Below, one piece after another: positions 50,257 through 62,409 of a stretch of 64,000 bases of DNA. The notes beneath the pieces are model-generated. The model was not told the origin of the DNA. It did not search any database and worked only from the letters and a program-made list of their open reading frames with translations. The first letter of the stretch is position 1. The number at the start of each line of letters is the position of its first letter. A program made the translations under genes and the position numbers. The stretch covers positions 43,648,001-43,712,000 of the forward strand of contig OZ241826.1 in NCBI GenBank assembly GCA_965202585.1. Direction: 5' to 3'. This DNA is from Thalia democratica (Eukaryota).

Positions 50257-52940
50257 TTTAACGTCTTGTCCAGAACAACTGCTGATTTATATAGTTTGCA
50301 ATTAAAAGTTTTTTTTAATATACTTGTTAAAAATACATGTTAAGGAATGCTTATTTGAAGACTTTAGAGTACGTTTAAAAAAATCATTTAATATTTTAAA
50401 GTTAAAAATACAAAGAGTTAGGGCCTTAAAAAAACAATCAAAATACAGTATGAATAACAGGTTCTAAATACTACTAAGGTTGCTGTTAAATCTGGTTTTC
50501 TTAAAAAGGTTTTTTGTATGATAAAATGAGTATCAGAAACAAATTTAGGCTTTTATTGTTTCTTGAACAAAAAAAAAAAACAATAAGCGCTCAAAAAACT
50601 TTAGTAATCGCACAGGTAATTTCTTATTAAAACAGATCGCATTTTGAATTGTGGAAAAGATTTAATAAAGTTTATTGTATATTTTCTTTTGATAAGTATG
50701 ACTGTGCTAGTTTTTTGTAAAAAAAAAGTTTTGCTATGTTTAGATGAAAACTAAAAAAACACTAAGAAAATAAACTATATTCAATTAGAGTTAACTGACA
50801 CAATCATAGTGTTGCTTATTAAAAAAAAAAGAAATTAATGATTTTTTAAGCATTTATAATGTTATATTTTTCAAAAGAGATTTTTTACTAAAAAACAGTC
50901 TTATAGAAACTTTTTTATTGCTTTTCTAAAAACAAAATGATTGCAATTTAAATGAGCATACTAAAACTGTTTTATCAATATCATTGTCCAACATTTAAAA
51001 ATGTAAGACTTCAGTATGTTTTATCTTCTGTTACATACTAAGTCTATTCAAAAATAGCTTACAAGGCGAAGAAATGTTTACTGTAAAACATTTTACTTTA
51101 TTTGTAAACTGTACTTAATAAACTTATTGGCCTTTTTAACTGTTTTTAAATTAGTCAATACTTTGTTTGTAATCATTTTTATGTATACATGTACTTTTTA
51201 TTAGAACTTTATTAGTATGAATAATAAACTGGTTCATTTTTTATTTTGAATTAGAGATTTAAATGAAAACTAAATGGATAAGCCAGAAAGAAAACTAATA
51301 ATTCAGATAGTCCTTAGAAAACAGTGATTTCAGACAAAAAATAGTTTAAAGAAACAATTTTCTTATTATTAACTTAGTTTTTACAAAACTATAATTTTTT
51401 TACTGCTAGGTGTTGTATGTTTTTTTGACCATATATATATAGTAATACTTTAAGTTTTACATTATATTGTTGTTTGGTCGCTTAAAAATCTAATTTTTTC
51501 TTTCTAAATTTTGTCCTTTGCGTGTAAGAAAAGCATCTTTTATACGTTACATTTACTAATTTACTCAGTTGTATTTTTATATTAAGGTGGTGTTCGATAA
51601 CTTCTAATATGGAATTCAATTTTTTTTCTATTAAAAAATCCGATGAGATATAATATAATGTTAAATTCGTTAAAAATTGATCTTGATTTACCTCTGAAAC
51701 TTGCCTAGTTTCATAATAAAATACAAAATGAATCCATAAATTAATTTACTTAAAAAGATAAAAATATCATTAAAAAAGTTTTTACTTTTTAAATAATTGG
51801 TAGTATTGGTAGGTTAAGTAGTAAAAAAAACCTTATACTCTTTTATTTATTTATTTTTTGATTTAATTTTTTGTTTATAGTACAATTATAAGAAAAACTG
51901 TTTACTTAAAAAATTTATCAGATGCAATAAGCAAATTTTGTAAAAGCACAAAAGTTTTGTATAGTAAATCAATACTAACATGTCTTAAGTTTAAGAGCTA
52001 ATAAGCATTCAGTATAATAAAAATATCTTAGTAAATGTTTTTTCTTAAAAAAGTAAAAAGTTTTACATACATAACTGAAAAATATAAACATTTAGTTTAG
52101 TGTAAATGATAACAGTCTTTGAATTTTACAAAACTATGTGTACATTTAATAGCTAATGTAATTGTGCTAGAGTCTATTTTTACAAGTATAGTATAAATCT
52201 AATCGTTTTAAAATTTTACTTTTTTAGTACAATAAGTGCTTAAGCTATAATTACTATTACTATCGAAGTTAAATATTATCTTATAAAAAAAATTAATAAC
52301 GTTTTTCCCTTTTCATATTATACAACATACTTTATTAAATATAACTTTAGTTTTACTGTTCAAAGTTTTCACTACACAAAATACACACTTCTGTGCTAAC
52401 ATGTACAATTAAACAAAAATATTCACATTTGAAACAGTTTTATTTGATTTTTTCAACAAATAGAAATTAAAATTAAGTTGATACAAAAATTAATTACAAA
52501 AAATGGAAAACTTATTATCAAATTAAATTAAAACATAAAGTTTTATAAATTTTAAAATATACACAAACATGAAGAATTTTGGGTAAGAAATAAGCAATTT
52601 AAAAACATTTAGCAAAATATTTTTAATGAACATCGTTATATCTAACAAAATTATTAAGAAAAGCACTTGAAAAATATTAGACAAGTCAAAACAAGTACCT
52701 TATAAAACATCTTGAGTAGAAAGCGACTTATAACCAAGAAAATCGGTCAGTAGTTTTTTGTAAACAAGAATAATACGTAAACATTTATTTAAATTTAATC
52801 TTGTCATTAAACTGACAATAGAGCTGGATTTGAATACTTTATATTAAGTTTTTCTTTTGTCGCTATTTAAATCAAATTATAAATTTTTTAAGCAGTTTTA
52901 TTTAAATTGTGTGTATGGATAGTATTTTATTGAGTTGAAA

Positions 52941-55900
52941 ATGAAGGCTTTGGATATTGCATTAATCTTGTTTATAAAAACAAACATATCATTTTGTTTT
53001 TACGATGAAACACTAATAAAAGGATCTACAGGGCTAAATGTAGTTATGAGATGTTTGGAAAAAATAAAAAAATCAGGTGAAATTTATTATTTTTAGACTA
53101 TAGTTTAAATTATAAGAAAGTTTAAACTTTGGTGTTCTACAAAGTTCTTTATTAATGTGAAATATATGTTTAGGTAAAAAAATCAAAAAAACAAACAACA
53201 CTTCAAAGTCTGTTGAAAATATTTGCTTAATAAGTTTTATAAATAGATAAAATAAAATTGCATGAATTTGATAATATAAACATAACTAAAATGAAAATTT
53301 AAAATGTTAAGAATTCGCAATTAGACCTTGATAAGTGTACTTTTTTTTTAAATGAATAGTTTTTAAATGAAAAGGTGTAAGATATAGCTCAGAATTTTTT
53401 TTAAATGTTAAAAACCATTTATAATATTTTAAAGATTTATGAAAAAGTAATACATAGCATTTGTCGTTGAGAGTAGGCTATCAAATTTTTTAAATTTTCT
53501 AATTTAAAAGTTTTTCTAATAAAAACAAAACTTCAGTATTATTTTTTTACTATATGCAAAATATTTAATGTAACAAGAGTTTTTCATGTCCCCTGTAATT
53601 AATTTTCGTTTTAGTAAAAACAAAGTATGAAACATTTTTGGCGCTAGGTGTATTTTTACTTTAAAATTGAAAGTTTAGTTTTTAACATATTTAAAAGTTA
53701 ATTTTGAAATAGTTTTAGTACTTAAAGAAAAACTTTCAGAAATTGATAAAATAGTTTGGTTTTTCGTAAATAACTAAACTTTAAACGTTTCAAATTTAAA
53801 GTTTGTTTTTCTAAAAGAATACAGTCTAACTTTTATTATTAAAACCTTATTATCGTTTTAAGAAACTAATGAGTAGAAGGTTTAAAAGTTTTATGTTTAG
53901 GTATTTTTAGAAATGATTGGGAATTCACTAGAAAGCTTGCTTATATTCAAAGTAAGGACGGCGAAAGCAAAACAATAGACATAAATGGTGGTATTTGGAA
54001 GGTTTACGTTCAAATTTTATTTGTTGAACTACTTTTAGTCGATAAATAAACTACTTGTTTCAAAAGACTTTGTTTTGACGCTAAAAAACTTTTATTGTAC
54101 TTAATTTTGTATTATTTAGTTTATATTAAAAAAAAGATTGCATATAGTTTAACTTACAGATAGATGCTTGTTTTATTTAGTTTATTAAAATTTTACAGCT
54201 CTCTTATGATTAACTTAGTGTTTCTAAACTTCTTTTTTATATAAGATTTTATAAGAAAAGACATAAACTTTTATTTTCTTTTAAACATATCAAACATATC
54301 AACAAGTCACGTTCAAATATATAAAACTATACAAGGCTAATTATTAAAAATTTTGGATAATAAAATATTGAAGCACAAAAAATATTTACCTTTTTTTCAT
54401 AGTAAAAAAATTAATAAACTAATTGCTTTAAAACTGAGTCAATGAATAGTACTATGCTTTTATGAAAAATAACAAAAATCAAGTTGATTTAAATTAAAAC
54501 TTGGTTAAATTTATATTCAAATTACTTAATTTTAAAAGAAAAAAAAAACTGTCCACATTTTATAAGTAAACCACACAATTTTATAAAAAGGAAAATGAAT
54601 CAAGTAAATTCTTTTGGCGAGATTTTTCACTGTATTTATGATTGATTTTTTTGTTTATAAGTTAAAAACAGATGCATTAATAAGATCTCAAATTAATTAT
54701 AAAAACAGAAAATAGTAGTATAAAACTGATTTCTGTAGCAATTACTTTTTTAGCCTAAAAACTTTTATACTATAAAAACTCAAATATTTTTTAAAAATCA
54801 AAAATAAACTCATAGAAACATATTGGTATTAACTATTTAACTTTTTAAAGGTTGTTACTACAATACTAGTTTTTGTTTCCTTGTTTACGATACAGAATGG
54901 TTTTTAGGTGGCAAAGGAACAGTTCTTATTCACTAAAGTTTCAAAAACGTGTTATTCAAACAAGCTACGCAATCAAATACTAGAAAAGTTCAACATTAGT
55001 TGGGAGGAAGCTTTGTATGAGCATTTAGACATACCGCTGTATTCAGCTATCGCATCAAGAATGTACATTGAGATTTCGTGTAGAAGAATAAACATTCCAA
55101 AAGATTTAAAAGGACAAGTACTATTTTACTTAAAATTTTATTTTTCTATTAAATCTTTTTATTAAAATACTTTTAGATAAAACATACTATCTAACAAGGT
55201 TCTAATTATTGCAAAAATTTAAAGCAATTCTCTATTTTAGTTTGACTTCTGGAAAACTCACTTTGAAAACGTTACAGCATCGCATTATGCGCCAAAAAAC
55301 TATGAAGAGTACAAATTTGTTGACTCATTAATACCAGAAAGTAATTGTCTATCAAATATATTGTGCATGTAGTTTTTAAATTAAAAGACTTCAATTTTTA
55401 GAATGCAAGTTGGCATTAGACGAGTTGATATTTTTGGTAGACACTTCATGGAAAACAGTTGTTGGCACGATGTCAGCCTACAAAAGCTTTATTTTACGAA
55501 TTTTAGAACACTTACCTACAAGTGGTCTTAAACTTGGGGTAGCAAGTTTTTCTAAGGACTTAATTGTTAGCATTCTTAATATTGAATACAAATAAATTGG
55601 TTTAAACATAAGAATGTAAATAAAAATGGTTGTGTGCAATAAACAAATGTAAAATATGAAAAATTAAAATCTATTAGTAAATACTAATAATTTGTTTTTA
55701 CTATATATTGAACCACTATTTTACCTTTGAATCTAAAAAGTATGTTTAGATTAAACTTGATAACATCAAATTTAATAAACGAAATATAATTATAAAATCT
55801 AAATAAAAACTCCTTAACTATAAATTATTAAACTAGCAACTATTACATCTTTTTTTAAACAGAATACTTACGTTAATATAATATAATTTAATTCGCGAAA

Positions 55901-58900
55901 TAAATGTTTTCAAATTTTATTTTTTAGTAAAAATTGAAAAGATTATGTACAAATTATAATTCATACACGCAAGTGTTCAAAAATATAAACATGTAAAATA
56001 GGTTTAACCAACATGATTAAATTATTTATCTTTTACAGGTCAACTTTCCATTGAGTACTGTAAATTCTTCAGAAAAAGTAAAACTTTCAATAAATAACAT
56101 TCAAATGCATAATGAGGAAATAAGTGATGTACCAAGTGCCTTTAGTTTTGTTCTTAACAGTTTTACTTCTGAGGATAAAAAAGAAAATATTTCAACTGCT
56201 AAGGTAAACTATGCAATAATATTCAGCTAGCATTATAATAAGGTGTCTTAAAATGTAGCAAAAAAAAACTAACAGTAGTTCTTATATAAGTAGTACAAAA
56301 TATTAAATTATTAAACACAAATAAGAAGTTATAATATTTCTATTAAACAATCAAAAAAGGTTCAAGTGGTTTTTGTACTTAGTGAAAACAGCAAAATTTT
56401 GGATTCAGAGTACTTTCATGACTTCAGATCTAAAGGAAACAATGTAATTAGAGTTTATGTGGAAAATGGTAGATCGGTTAGAAACATTACACTTTTTTTA
56501 GAAAAAGTTTTTATACTAATATTTAATAGTTAGTAGTGAGTTTATATTTCTTAAAGTGTTCAAAAAAACTTACCACAAATTTAAGAAAATTTAACTTTGT
56601 TGTAAACTTTGATTTTAATTAAACTTGTTTCTTGTAAGTTAAAAAAAAGGTACATTGAGGTTTTCAAAATCGACATTGAAATTTTGTTGCTAAGTCTATA
56701 TAAAAGTTATAATTAAAAAAAATGTATAAAATTACTTAAACATTTCTCTAATTTGGATTATTAATCTTACTTAATATTTAACTTATCAATTTATTTTTGA
56801 TTATGCAGTTTGCTTAAATTTACAACAATCAACAAAATCAGTTTCTGTTCTTTCTATCAAAATCGTCAATGGTATTTTACTTATATTTAAACTTATATTT
56901 TATAAACTGCATTATCATACACAATATTATTTATAGAGTAACTTTCCAAAAACCATAAAACTTTCAATCGTGTAAATAAATATCAAAACTCAGGTAGAGC
57001 ATAACCAAACAGTTTCAAACAAAGTTTTTGTTGTTCCGAATCACAAGTATCTTTACCAACTTGAGCAACCTGCAGCCGAAGCTGTTTGTGAAAGTTTGGT
57101 TTTATATATACTTTTGTAACTTTTTCATTACCGAATAAACTTGTATTACAAATGTAGGTTCCTTTTTAATCCAAAACTTTACTGCATTCGAAAAAATTTT
57201 GGAGCCCGGAAAAAAGATTATTTTTGAAATTGCTCTATCATCAAGTTACTTAATAAGAATAAAGTCAAACATATCAGAAGTTTATGGGTACACATCGGAA
57301 GACGACTCTGTGCTGCCAGATTCTTCATTTTATCAACAAATGTTACTAGTTGTTTTTCTGAATGCTCTTATTGACTTAATAATAATGTAATATATGCCTA
57401 TCATAGAAAAACTTGTCCGAACTTAGTAAATTAAATGATCTTTAAGACACTAAACATATTTAATATGTGTCAACTTGCTTTAGCATTTATTAAAAGTCAT
57501 ATTTTTGTATTTTAAATGACTCTTTATACTTTTTTCTTTCTAGTGTTAATATGGTTCCGCTTTGTGAAAAATTATTTCTTTTTTTAATTATTATGTTTAA
57601 TAAAAATAAATTAGTTTAAAGTATTTAGCTTGAAACTTGCAAACTCAATAAAAAAACCACAAACACAGGTTAAATATCACTACGCAGTCTTCTGAATACG
57701 TGTTTACAAATTTTCTTATACTAACTGTTTCAAACGAAGGTAAGACCTGCGCGTCACTTACTGTTAGTATTGAAAAACCGGAAAATTTAGACAATGAAAA
57801 AGCTCAGCAGCAATTCATTCCAACAGGTTTACAAATTAATATTTAAGATAATGGAAAGGATTTAACTTACTATTCAACAGGTAAATACCAACCGAACTCA
57901 CTCATAGTAGTAGTTTCAAGTTTACTTGCCTTATTGCTCATCTTGATACTTTTTATGCGCGGTTGCCATAACAAACAGAAGGTTCATTCTCAGCACCAGT
58001 ACGCATTTAAGGTGAGAGTTTGTTTGTGATCTAGCTAAAATAAATTAAAGCTTTTAATTATGTTGATTCTAACAGGAAGACACTCCAAATGCAGAACAAA
58101 GCAAAAATAGGTGGGTTATTATTAGATTTGTTTAAAAGTAGTATATTATTTTTTCAAACAGCTCTAGTTTTATTTTATACTTAATTCTGGATGATTAAAA
58201 AGCTAATAGATTTTTAAAATAAAACAGAGACACTCGAAAAGTTAGCCCAGAGAGCCGAGCGTTGGACAAACAAGATATTTCAGATAAAGCTGAAAACTTT
58301 ACATCTGTTATAACAGAGAGTAGGCATTTTGAAGTTGATACTCAAGAAGACAAACAAGTGAAGACATCAGAAGAATCAGGTCACTACTCATCAGCGACTG
58401 ACATTTACAAAAATGAAGATGCGTTCTGCACTCTTCACGGAGTTGAAGCACGAAGAACTGCTGCACAAGAAACTACATCGGTGGAGCAAAAAAGTGTTGC
58501 AAGTAAATCTTTCAGCTTTGAAGTGTTTGAAAATACCGAGAGAGGTGAGAATTTACAAAACCGTAAAACGGTAATAAGTATTTGATTATTATATTTTTAG
58601 TAGACAAGTTAAATAATAAAAAGTGTATGATTTTTATGTTTTTAAATTTTATGTTAAGTAGATTATTTATTTAAAGTTACAGATGAAGAAATTGAGAATA
58701 GCTCTACTCAAGAAACGTTCGGGTTTAAAGAACAATCACAAAAACTTGATGCAGAATCTCAAGAAAGTTCTCTAAATACAGAAGACGACCAGAAACCTGT
58801 CGAAGTTTGTTATTTTGTTGGTTCTTTGCAAGGCCTTTTTAGCGATAAAAATGTTTGTTTCAGAAAGCTAATCATAAAAGCTATAACTTTGTGTAAATTA

Positions 58901-61697
58901 TTTTAAAATTTGTGCCTTTTTTGTCTATTTTAAGTTTTTGCACATTTTTCTGTTTTTCACAAACTATTTCTTAAAAGTAAAAGTAAAAATAACTAACTAT
59001 TGTTTTTAACACTTGTTTTTGTAAGTACGAAATATTTTTAAAATTTAAAACTTTTAACTTTTTACGTTTGACTTTACTTCTAAGTTAAAGCGAAATAGTG
59101 ACTAGTCTCGCTTGAAAAAATCAGCAAAAAATAAACACAGGACATGATAGACGACCTGAAATCAGCAATTTACAGTTGCGACACTGATCAGGTGATCATG
59201 GTGAGACAAGAGCTTGAAAGTTATATGGCGCCACCGGAAGTAGAACGGATAATTGATACAACCCAGCTAACCTTCGGTTCGTTGAATAATTTCAATGCAA
59301 AGTTATTAAAATGTTCCTATAGTTTAAATTGAAAGTTTAAAAACTAATTTAAAAATTTTAAACCTAAAATTAGGTTTTTTATTTAGTGTTCCACATTTAA
59401 GAGTGAATTTTTAAAGTTTATTGTTATTTTTTCTCTTTTTTCCATGAACTACTATTGATTATTTTAGTAGGTATAAACTTTTTTTTACCTTAAAATTTAA
59501 AAAAAAAAATTGATGATGACCAAACACACTCAAATTTAATTTATACACATTAAGTATTTATGTACATAAAACAGTTTAAAATATTAAAAACTAAAAGCTA
59601 TTTAAGGGTAACGTTTTTTTAAATGACCTTAAAGAAAGTTAAAAAAGTTCCAAGCCTTTTTAAAATAAAAGTTACTTTTAGCCAAATTATTTTCATTGTA
59701 AGTTTAGATTTATTTTTAAAATTTTTATATGTTTTTCAGAAATTTTATAAAAGTTTAAGTTTTATAACTGAAATATAAAACAATAAATAAAAAAAAAACT
59801 AATAGTTATAATAAAGTTTCTCGGTAAGACATTTTGCTATTAAATTAAAAGCAAGATGACTTGTTTAGTGATTACCCAAAATTGTACAGTTGTGTTTATA
59901 AATATTTCTTATTTTGAAAGTTACTAAGTAGTACAAACTATAGTTTAGTAAGCATATGTTCTATCTCAGATAACAAAGATTATTTTATCACAATTTTACT
60001 AAAATCATTTCTTTTCAAAGTTCTTCAAAGTTTTAACTTATCTTATTATAATAGTATAAAAAGACCAAAGAATAATAAATCAGATTTTGTTAAAATAATT
60101 CTTAATTGGTATTCCGGTGTGCACAACATCTTTAATTTAAAAATAAACTATGTAGAAACTGACAATTATTTTGAACCAATTGACTAGTTTATGAAATACA
60201 AAATTTGATACTGACATTTAAAAAAATTATTTAGATTTTGATGAGTTTTTGACTGGTGATGATTTACCAAGTTGTTATATGGTCATTAAAAAGCTAAAAG
60301 ACAAAAACTTAATGAACGAAGCCTCAAAAGATATAGATAAAAAATGTACCGAAAAGTTTGTTAGTAAAAGACAGGTTTATAATTTGTTTTTACATAGATT
60401 ACAGCAAATTAAAGTTAGAAACTTATTTTTATCTAAAAGTGTTGAAGATTTCAAGCTAAAAAATAATTTGAAAAATGTTAAAAACTCTATAAGTAGTTTT
60501 TAAATTTTAAACTATAACTGTACAATAAACATAAACTTTTATACCAGTAACTTTTATTTTACATTGCAGAAAAGAATAAAAACAAAGGTAAGTTTTGTTT
60601 ATTATTTATCAAAATAACATTATTTACCTAAACAACTAGGGTTTAAAAATATAAAATGTAAGCACTAAATAAATATAAAAGTTAAGCTACGTATTGTAGC
60701 TAAATGTTCAAAAGTTTTATTCTTACATTTTTTTAATTAGTTCTTTAATTAAATACAAAATAATAGTCCTTAATTGGTTATTTAATATTTATGTTGTTGG
60801 AATAAATACTATAATTTACTTCTGTGGAGAGTTAAGTTTAAGATATTAAGCGACAATTATTTTTACTTCACTCATGACTATAAACTTACTTTTTTAAACA
60901 ATCATAATTAAAAAACAAAAATAATTCAGATTCGCCGGAAAATGCTCCAGATGAGCCAGGCAAGGGTTTCCGAGATCAGGAGTTACCAGTTTCCACCCGC
61001 GGGAGTTCAGGAAGTGATGACGTCAGTCCTCATCCTGCTCGGGTACCGTCATCACAATATTCAGGTTGTCAAAAGTTTGAATAAATAAAAGTTATAAAAT
61101 TCAAAGTATGTAAATTTAAATATAGTAAAACGATTAGTTTAGACAAAACTTTTACAAACTTGTAAAAACAGAAAATTTTATCCTCTCAATTTTATTTTAC
61201 TGAGGTTTTGATTTTAAATAAAAACTTTAAAGTTTTATTTTAAAAGCTTAAATTTAAAAAATACCTCACTAAAAGAAGTGGAACCAGATACAGAGCATTC
61301 TGGGAAGGACGGGTAAAAGATCTCTGTTGAGGAAGATTTACGTGTTCGATCCTCATAACGTTAGCAAGAAGCAAGCTTTGCAGGCAAAAAGAATTTTGAA
61401 GAATTTTACTTTAAATTCAGTTGCTGAAATAAGTGCCGGGCTCGCTCTTTTCTACGTATTTGTGAGTTTGCTATTGATTTCAAGCACAATCTGATTTATA
61501 AAGCACTGTTTTGTATGTAAATTAATTCTTTTTAATTAACTCAATATTCAAACAACTTTTATATAAGCTTTCGATTGAATTAAATTTTTTTTGACAAGGC
61601 TCACTTTGTCATTGAGGAGGTTCAAGAAATTCCAGAAGCAAAAAGAAAATTCAAGTCACTTTCAATTGATATGAAGCTAAAACACTTGAAAAATTAA
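52941..61697 (+). CDS. Predicted type I membrane protein (~916 aa): signal peptide, lysozyme/SLT-like domain, VWA, beta-rich domain, TM, acidic linker, helical region, dynein-stalk MTBD-like domain
   Basis: Frame-consistent exons: 52941-53076, 53901-54001, 54908-55117, 55241-55340, 55402-55565, 56039-56203, 56360-56476, 56994-57093, 57158-57341, 57669-57826, 57881-58011, 58076-58109 (or -58113), 58230 (or 58228)-58544, 58683-58804, 59141-59276, 60235-60374, 60570-60587, 60930-61064, 61276-61461, 61599-61697 (TAA); total 2751 nt. Motifs: RKLAYIQSKDG..GGIWKV, DIPLYSAIASRMY, GQFDFWKTHF; CKLALDELIFLVDTS (VWA); TM LIVVVSSLLALLLILILFM; EIRSYQFPPAGVQEVMTSVLILLG..WNQIQSIL. Confidence 0.78.
57902..57958 (+). 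other. Transmembrane helix of the VWA/MTBD-like protein
   Basis: 19 consecutive uncharged, mostly aliphatic residues followed by R-G-C-H-N-K-Q-K (positive-inside). Confidence 0.85.
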
Positions 61698-62409
61698 GAA
61701 CAACAGTTGAAAAATTTAACTTTTGAAGTTTTTAAAAGTACTTAACATCAAAACTTAGTAACTTAAAACATTTTGTCATTATAGCGAGAATACCATTTGT
61801 AAGATACAGTGGAGAGAAGTTATTTATTATAGTATAAAGAAGTGCTAAATAACTACAAGTATTACGAAAAATGATCCTAACACTACTATTTCAGTGGTAA
61901 TTCTACGTTTTACAAGTATTTTTTATAAACAAATTTGTAATCAAAATAAATTAAAAAATTAAAAAGTTCAAATAAAACTATAATGAGTTTTGTAAGAAAA
62001 GGTTCATGAACTAATTAATCTTAAAAATAAAAAGTTATAATCGTTTGCTTTCGAATACTTATTAACAAAAGCTTAATAGATTTTATACAAATCAAATATA
62101 CAAAACTACTGAGTACTTGATTATATGTGTACAATGAAAAAACACTACTTTTATCGTGACAAAATAAATAAAAAGTACAGTAATTATATTTTTCATAACT
62201 AATTAAAACCTGAGTAATGTTTTTATCTTTATCTATAAGTGTTGCAAATGCTACATAAGTATAAAAATTTTCCTCCAGTAACACATATGAAGATTTTTAG
62301 CTTTCTTTTAATAACTAAGACTATAAAGTTGATATGCTTTAAAAATACACAACAGTTTATAAATTTTATATTACTTTGCAGCAGTGTTTTCTAAAATGTA
62401 ACTATAGAG

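Follow-up and report, generated by a model that had tools for sequence, protein, structure and literature searches.

To our knowledge, the microtubule-binding domain (MTBD) of dynein has been treated as a dynein-specific part, whose affinity is set by the registry of the coiled coil in the stalk. Here we describe a domain of this kind that has neither a stalk nor a motor and forms the end of a membrane protein of the tunicate Thalia democratica. The gene lies at about 52941-61697 on the forward (+) strand of the window, by which we mean a stretch of 64,000 nucleotides (assembly GCA_965202585.1, contig OZ241826.1, positions 43,648,001 to 43,712,000); all coordinates below are positions in the window.

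The dynein MTBD (PF12777; structures 3ERR, 6KIO/6KJN/6KJO, 6RZB, 6RZA, and 2RR7) is a six-helix fold (helices H1 to H6). In dynein, microtubule affinity is switched by the sliding of coiled-coil segment CC1 of the stalk against segment CC2 (PMC7042235). Six residues of yeast dynein form salt bridges with tubulin: K3117, E3122, R3124, R3152, R3159, and R3201 (PMC7042235). The Glu/Arg pair of yeast H1 contacts alpha-R402 and beta-E199 (PMC7042235).

The tail of the T. democratica protein ends in a helical module with the same helix order as the dynein MTBD. The two also have a signature in common: E-I-[KR]-S in H1, followed by PP..V, LLG, an invariant tryptophan that opens H3, and S-x-[AG] with a downstream aromatic residue in H6. 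The module has short stubs of CC1 and CC2 and keeps the Glu/Arg pair of H1. Unlike dynein, it lacks both an AAA+ ring and a long antiparallel stalk; H3 is flanked by a 3-residue insertion and a T-G-K insertion; no equivalent of R3201 remains, and the positions of K3117 and R3152 are not conserved; and the MTBD is preceded by an additional helical extension of about 95 amino acids.

A homologue of the dynein MTBD without a motor

The original prediction, which was made from the DNA letters, joined three exons (60930-61064, 61276-61461, and 61599-61697) into an MTBD-like module without a motor and listed a series of motif blocks in dynein order. These blocks are truly aligned with dynein. When we compared the first of these exons by itself (45 amino acids) to 177,635 PDB sequences with phmmer, we obtained 22 matches, and all of them were to dynein heavy chains at H1-H3 of the MTBD (best E = 0.0015). 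We then used a profile from an alignment of 25 members of the module's family (alignment A1), which includes no dynein. Its comparison to the PDB gave 56 matches at E of 1 or better, and 53 of the 56 were dynein heavy chains. The best matches were to DNAH6 (E = 1.3e-11) and to the yeast cytoplasmic MTBD (E = 1.4e-10), while the three non-dynein matches had E > 0.3. The alignment of A1 with the yeast MTBD spans H1-H6, with two small insertions that flank H3.

A match to the Pfam family MT (PF12777), which the original prediction had suggested looking for, was found for only part of the family. Six of the 25 members match at E of 0.01 or better (best E = 8.2e-07), but most members score under the 24-bit gathering cut-off, including the ortholog from the tunicate Styela clava (16.3 bits); the protein from the sponge Oscarella passes (26 bits, with the whole protein). 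Because most members score below this cut-off, the family is mostly unannotated.

We also predicted the fold, using AlphaFold2 with alignment A1 and residues 687-925 of the Styela ortholog. The model has a mean predicted local distance difference test score (pLDDT) of 91.9 and a predicted TM-score (pTM) of 0.83. It contains thirteen helices, of which five short ones form the N-terminal side and the last spans residues 195-216; a disordered end follows, with pLDDT below 50 from about residue 219. In a Foldseek search against the PDB, the top 45 matches were all dynein stalks or MTBDs, so the expected MTBD helical bundle is present in the model (for 6kjo, TM-score by target 0.74 and root-mean-square deviation 2.5 Å). 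Structural alignment with VIA-align gave Z of 12.4-16.9 for eleven dynein MTBD entries, including those bound to microtubules (6rzb, Z = 13.4; 6rza, Z = 14.0; 6kio, Z = 12.6), and at most 6.3 for unrelated helical proteins. When superposed on the mouse stalk (5ayh), model residues 67-217 correspond to dynein residues 3261-3408, a range that takes in the MTBD together with pieces of CC1 (about 24 residues) and CC2 (13 residues). No structure significantly matched the initial 95 or so residues of the module (Z of 6.3 or less). Searches of clusters in the AlphaFold database (AFDB) return other members of the family across the whole 220 residues, with TM-scores by query of up to 0.84.

On the evidence of both the sequence profile and the predicted fold, the tail module and the dynein MTBD are genuinely homologous. 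There is no AAA+ ring in the gene: the module is followed by a stop codon, and the upstream exons encode a transmembrane helix and a VWA domain. Nor did we find a long antiparallel coiled coil of CC1 and CC2 in the module, as there is no returning CC2. Thus, the module belongs to the dynein MTBD superfamily but is neither a dynein nor a stalk, and the proposal of an MTBD-like module without a motor was correct.

The module is larger than first drawn. The three exons do belong to it, but the match to a hidden Markov model (HMM) of the family covers residues 204-415 of the tail, so the module begins at 59141, which is two exons further upstream, and comprises about 212 amino acids. Counted from the transmembrane exon, the product has 434 residues: an acidic linker (residues 46-203; isoelectric point or pI of 4.6), a helical part (204-300), the MTBD-like core (301-415; pI 9.9), and a basic end of 19 residues. 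The MTBD homologue itself is the C-terminal 120-130 amino acids of the module; it consists of six helices (H1-H6) flanked by short pieces of CC1 (about 24 residues) and CC2 (about 13). The match to the family model ends 19 amino acids before the stop codon. About 35 residues follow H6 in the T. democratica protein, and in other members the protein ends 15-35 residues after H6. The core is the most basic of the set: across 119 family-aligned residues its net charge is +10 (pI 10.4), as compared to a family median of +3, and the C-terminal tail contributes another +6.

Two structures of non-dynein proteins also resemble the model. Chain L of 9ya2, from the intraconoidal microtubule of Toxoplasma gondii, aligns with the MTBD part of the model with Z = 10.2 over 125 residues. 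This chain was built into density on the outside of the microtubule (PMC12819142), and its fold is like that of the MTBD part of our model. In contrast to the dyneins, it is only 11% identical to the module and gives no profile match, and it is a protist protein from a different context. Judged by length and numbering, the chain is probably that of ICMAP2, a protein with a resolved globular domain that was described without naming a fold and not as dynein-like (PMC12819142). The other structure is chain 2e of 9e5c, a 507-amino-acid protein of the doublet microtubule of Trypanosoma brucei, with Z = 8.2. On the strength of these model-based comparisons, we regard both chains as leads towards a microtubule-binding precedent outside of dynein. 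In AFDB, the fold is also shared by ciliate and kinetoplastid proteins of about 500 amino acids that are annotated as "dynein stalk domain-containing" and by trypanosome "antigenic proteins."

An uncharacterized family in invertebrates

To identify relatives of the module, we compared the exon at 61276-61461 (62 amino acids) to 1.84 billion cluster representatives with phmmer. At E of 0.001 or better, we found 86 representatives. None is the size of a dynein (the largest has at most 1547 amino acids), and no dynein AAA domain was found in any member that we scanned. The original prediction mentioned similar motor-less domains in uncharacterized invertebrate proteins, and this was accurate. All of the long proteins have their match in the last 100 or so residues, and Pinctada has internal copies as well. 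The family HMM has 220 positions and was built without the T. democratica sequence. Against this model, the T. democratica tail scores 168.5 bits (independent E = 8.5e-52) and matches positions 4-218. A word-based homologue search with the Styela tail returned isoforms of the Styela protein only.

The module occurs in several architectures. In Lottia, Lingula, Patella, Sinanodonta, a "KY" protein of Branchiostoma, and Pinctada, it follows a Transglut_core domain and Ig-like_KY repeats, without a transmembrane helix. In amphioxus proteins named "CLCA1-like," it follows a signal peptide, CLCA_N and VWA domains, and a transmembrane helix. In Styela, the order is signal peptide, VWA, transmembrane helix, and module; the Phallusia protein is a short transmembrane form. 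Finally, the module is found in coiled-coil proteins of 540-600 amino acids, namely the "trichohyalin-like" proteins of Apostichopus and Plakobranchus and a protein of the sponge Oscarella. Further members are present in the rotifer Adineta and the orthonectid Intoshia, and an AFDB match with accession T1F739, which we take to be from the leech Helobdella, also belongs to the family. Overall, the family extends across sponges, rotifers, orthonectids, molluscs, brachiopods, annelids, echinoderms, amphioxus, and tunicates, on at least three kinds of scaffold.

The closest relatives are from other tunicates. A maximum-likelihood tree groups the T. democratica sequence with those of Styela, Ciona savignyi, and Phallusia, with support of 98/90 for the clade. 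The proteins Styela clava LOC120325398 (XP_077966891.1), Ciona savignyi H2Z6E4, and Phallusia mammillata LOC104266065 have the same layout as the T. democratica protein: a signal peptide, an ectodomain, a VWA domain, a transmembrane helix, and a tail that ends in the module. The signature S-x-G-L-x-L-F-Y-x-F is common to Ciona, Phallusia, and T. democratica, and Styela has S-E-A-L-A-V-F-Y-T-F. Compared to the Styela protein, the T. democratica protein is more basic, it has lost an arginine before H6 that Styela keeps, and the sequence at the metal site of the VWA domain is D-T-S-W-K instead of D-S-S-L-S.

Other members are more different. The amphioxus proteins annotated as "calcium-activated chloride channel regulator 1-like" (XP_035689228.1 and XP_019614282.1) also have a signal peptide, a VWA ectodomain, a transmembrane helix, and a tail with the module, but they carry the metalloprotease-like N-terminal domain of the CLCA family, which was not matched in the T. 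democratica exons that we scanned or in the Styela ortholog. The KY-like proteins (from Lottia, Lingula, Patella, Pinctada, and the Branchiostoma "KY") end in a 220-amino-acid module that scores 230-285 bits against the family HMM. Unlike the T. democratica protein, they are cytoplasmic scaffolds without a transmembrane helix or a VWA domain. One protein from Pinctada imbricata (KAK3098481.1) contains three tandem copies of the whole module (residues 526-734, 913-1138, and 1263-1434), which suggests multivalent binding.

No named source gives a function for any member of this family, and all of them are called uncharacterized. Automatic annotation touches part of the family: a 199-amino-acid AFDB entry (A0A210PYQ3) is named "cytoplasmic dynein 2 heavy chain 1," and 14% of the members of the Atlas clusters carry PF12777. 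Our full-text literature searches found no description of a motor-less MTBD family and no named motor-less example, and in a 2026 review of the modules of microtubule-associated proteins (MAPs), the terms "MTBD" and "stalk" are both absent. The family is a conserved MTBD module, motor-less and stalk-less, without a functional description in the literature that we searched.

Is the module a microtubule anchor?

We mapped the six tubulin-contacting residues of yeast dynein onto the 25 aligned members and onto the T. democratica protein. The Glu/Arg pair of H1 is nearly invariant: the position of E3122 is Glu in 24 of 25 members and that of R3124 is Lys or Arg in 22 of 25, and T. democratica has Glu and Arg. 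The position of K3117 is Gln in 20 of 25 members and also in T. democratica. At R3152, 12 of 25 members have Lys or Arg, and T. democratica has Asn. At R3159, most members (22 of 25) have Gly, followed by a basic residue at the position of K3160 (Lys or Arg in 24 of 25) and by the inserted T-G-K; T. democratica has Gly and then Arg. The position of R3201 is Asp or Glu in 16 of 25 members, and 14 of 25 have Arg or Lys one position earlier; in T. democratica, Glu is preceded by Ala. In short, the pair in H1 and the basic character at the end of H3 persist, and the arginine of H6 is lost.

The reading that we favor, with modest confidence, is that the protein is a VWA membrane protein whose motor-less MTBD docks constitutively onto microtubules. 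Because the stalk is absent, the module cannot be regulated by a motor, so we infer that any binding to microtubules should be constitutive. The module would then be a motor-independent docking site for the acidic surface of the microtubule. Docking would occur via the conserved Glu/Arg pair of H1, the basic end of H3 with its G-K-T-G-K loop, and the unusually basic surface of the T. democratica protein. In this way, a VWA receptor at the cell surface would be tethered to cortical microtubules. As judged from the contact residues and the very basic core, binding of the T. democratica module to microtubules is plausible, with an even chance or slightly better.

Several points weigh against this reading. 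The T. democratica protein keeps just two of the six salt-bridge residues (the Glu and the Arg of H1), with Gln, Asn, and Gly at three of the others, and at the position of R3201 the charge is reversed to Glu, as it is to an acidic residue in 16 of 25 members. In the tree the protein has a long branch, its identity to relatives does not exceed 31% over the module, and the fold was predicted for the Styela ortholog, which stands in for this divergent protein. By itself, the exon at 61276-61461 has no match in the PDB by phmmer, and Pfam MT is not matched by any single exon of the window. Finally, RNA contigs bridge neither 57270-57670 nor anything upstream of 56099, where the linkage of the gene is provided by the open frame and by collinearity with the ortholog.

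The main rival to microtubule docking is that the MTBD fold was kept but repurposed, so that its partner is free tubulin, a different protein of the cytoskeleton or of a scaffold, or acidic lipids in the membrane close to the anchor. We consider this a real possibility, albeit with clearly less than an even chance. The poor retention of the salt-bridge residues and the acidic residue in place of the H6 arginine would be expected under repurposing, and the +10 charge of the T. democratica domain suits acidic lipids equally well. Furthermore, the most conserved surface motif that is specific to the family (G-K-T-G-K-E-x-L-K-R-R) has no counterpart in dynein, and neither does the helical N-terminal half of about 95 amino acids have a significant structural match. 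On the other hand, H1 has retained its pair and H3 its basic end, the fold and the helix order match those of microtubule-bound MTBDs (Z of 12.6-14 for 6kio, 6rzb, and 6rza), and the non-dynein chain on the Toxoplasma intraconoidal microtubule matches as well (Z = 10.2).

The family may have a broader history. We tentatively propose, at somewhat under even chances, that the stalk tip was copied out of the motor early in animal evolution and went on to serve by itself as a constitutive anchor for microtubules, which would make it a new class of MAP module for VWA/CLCA receptors and KY-like scaffolds, and that it was lost in vertebrates, arthropods, and nematodes. If true, these losses would explain why the module has escaped study.

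Gene structure and transcripts

We used contigs from three RNA data sets: a public run from the same organism with exon-only coverage (X5), a marine metatranscriptome (X1), and a second metatranscriptome from a related organism (X6). We refined the joints in the contigs to GT..AG borders and counted the phase by exon lengths starting at the transmembrane exon.

The three exons of the original prediction were exact in their translations, splice sites, and phase. The exon at 60930-61064 encodes the end of the CC1-like helix and H1-H2 (E-I-R-S-Y, PPAGV, and LLG). The exon at 61276-61461, through which the 86 representatives were matched, encodes H3-H6, with the invariant Trp, the family-specific loop G-R-T-G-K-R, and the S-A-G...F-Y-V-F sequence. 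The exon at 61599-61697 encodes the end of H6, the short CC2 stub, the basic C-terminal tail of 19 amino acids, and a TAA stop codon at 61695-61697; its translation continues for 24 residues past the sequence that was first written. All three have canonical AG acceptors and GT donors and are in phase 0. An X5 contig of 511 nucleotides and an X1 contig of 322 nucleotides both join 61064 to 61276 and 61461 to 61599. A scan of metagenomes for the junction of 61064 with 61276 gave no match. The X5 contigs cover 60928-61711, and the part beyond the stop codon is the 3' untranslated region (UTR).

The module begins with two more exons. The exon at 59141-59276 encodes the helical N-terminal half, and RNA contigs show it joined to 58804 on one side and to 60235 on the other. 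The exon at 60235-60374 encodes the part of the helical half that leads into the CC1-like helix; both X1 and X6 join 59273 to 60234, X6 continues to 60928, and there is a GT donor after 60374. More precisely, an X6 contig of 584 nucleotides joins 59273 to 60234, runs to 60371, joins this to 60928-61064, and continues into the exon at 61276. The X6 transcript has 19 unaligned letters at the joint between 60371 and 60928, which may be about 18 extra in-frame bases. In the intron between 60374 and 60930, the X5 depth includes a match of about 55 nucleotides near 60567-60621; this is more likely a repeat match than a cassette exon. Within the introns, we also found dispersed AT-rich repeats at 59390-59865 and 61175-61293, where depth is raised several-fold in DNA-like runs from two organisms (X2 and X4), with many chimeric joints.

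Upstream of the module, the transmembrane exon (57881-58011) encodes a hydrophobic helix followed by basic residues; X5 contigs join 57826 to 57881 and 58011 to 58076, with GT..AG borders. Three exons (58076-58110, 58228-58544, and 58677-58804) encode the acidic, Ser/Thr-rich linker of about 158 amino acids (pI 4.6). One X5 contig of 730 nucleotides joins 57895-58009, 58226-58542, 58675-58804, and 59141-59273, and the 35 letters between its first two pieces fit 58076-58110 (with joints from 58009 to 58074 and from 58108 to 58226). Other X5 contigs join the ectodomain exons 56099-56203, 56360-56476, 56994-57093, and 57158 onwards. With the refined exons, the reading frame stays open all the way from 57652 to the stop codon; for 60235-60374, it is open only if the donor is after 60374. 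Because the 730-nucleotide contig runs from the transmembrane exon to 59273, is overlapped by X1 and X6 contigs that reach 61276, and X5 covers 60928-61711, a single series of overlapping transcripts connects the transmembrane exon to the dynein-like exons.

These contigs bear on another explanation, which is that the gene model is an artefact and the MTBD-like exons form a separate small cytoplasmic gene, apart from the VWA and transmembrane protein. It is true that no single contig spans the whole gene and that the databases contain short family members without a transmembrane helix. But the overlapping X5, X1, and X6 contigs run from the transmembrane exon to 61711 in an open frame, the layout of transmembrane helix plus tail is also found in Styela, amphioxus, and Phallusia, and both ends of the Styela protein are collinear with the window. 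We therefore reject a fusion artefact, which is very improbable. The remaining explanation, namely that the resemblance arose by chance or that the exons are a decayed piece of a dynein gene, has a negligible probability and we reject it as well: although each exon is short and only one of the three has a match of its own, significant profile matches are to dynein alone (E down to 1e-11), the family HMM and structural scores are high, and conservation of the module reaches from sponge to tunicate, with intact, expressed frames and a stop codon and 3' UTR directly after it.

A single-pass membrane protein with a VWA ectodomain

The gene encodes a single-pass type I membrane protein that is the ortholog of Styela clava LOC120325398. 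Its predicted layout is a signal peptide, an N-terminal ectodomain, a VWA domain, a transmembrane helix, and a tail with the disordered acidic linker and the helical module. The tail is expected to be cytoplasmic because basic residues follow the transmembrane helix. The proposed continuity of the frame with an upstream transmembrane helix was borne out by the RNA contigs, and the ectodomain is linked by collinearity with the ortholog, which was matched at both ends (from 52926 to 61461). In tblastn comparisons, N-terminal residues 13-150 of the Styela protein align to 52926-53078, 53885-54004, and 54929-55069, and C-terminal residues 782-889 align to 60927-61461.

The first coding exon (52941-53078) contains an ATG and the signal-peptide-like hydrophobic start of the ectodomain, in an open frame; residues 13-64 of the Styela protein match 52926-53078 at 41% identity. 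The two exons that follow (53885-54004 and 54929-55069) are matched by Styela residues 59-98 and 103-150. The N-terminal ectodomain exons (53885-55069) are conserved with Styela at 40-46% identity but match no Pfam family, either exon by exon in the window or in the Styela ortholog. Of the ectodomain that was first proposed (signal peptide, lysozyme-like, and VWA), the signal peptide and the VWA domain stand, and the lysozyme-like label is not supported, as it has no Pfam match in the window or in the ortholog. Suggested links to cilia or mucociliary epithelium and to glycan sensing found no support.

The exon at 55380-55592 contains the start of the VWA domain and matches Pfam VWA at E = 0.0018, with 19 bits (the cut-off is 23.8), while the Styela ortholog has a full VWA domain at 92.5 bits along with its transmembrane helix. 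The motif that resembles a metal ion-dependent adhesion site (MIDAS) is D-T-S-W-K, where D-x-S-x-S is expected; Styela has D-S-S-L-S and amphioxus has D-T-S-G-S. From this sequence, the metal site of the T. democratica VWA domain may be impaired. We also considered whether the gene encodes a CLCA protein. CLCA_N (PF08434) had no Pfam match in the exons at 53873-54046 and 54908-55162, which were searched as single exons and hence with low sensitivity, and in the Styela ortholog Pfam identified VWA only; we rejected this assignment.

Implications

A family with an MTBD but no stalk or motor would be a natural "registry-locked" MTBD, in which the binding of this fold to tubulin could be studied. 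It would also extend the repertoire of MAPs by a new module that binds microtubules. Should microtubule binding be absent, the module remains a clear example of a motor part that was recruited to a new partner. The orthologs in Ciona (LOC100182150) and Phallusia (LOC104266065) make the question directly testable in those animals. For the invertebrate chordates, the family would point to a direct link between extracellular receptors of the VWA/CLCA type and microtubules.

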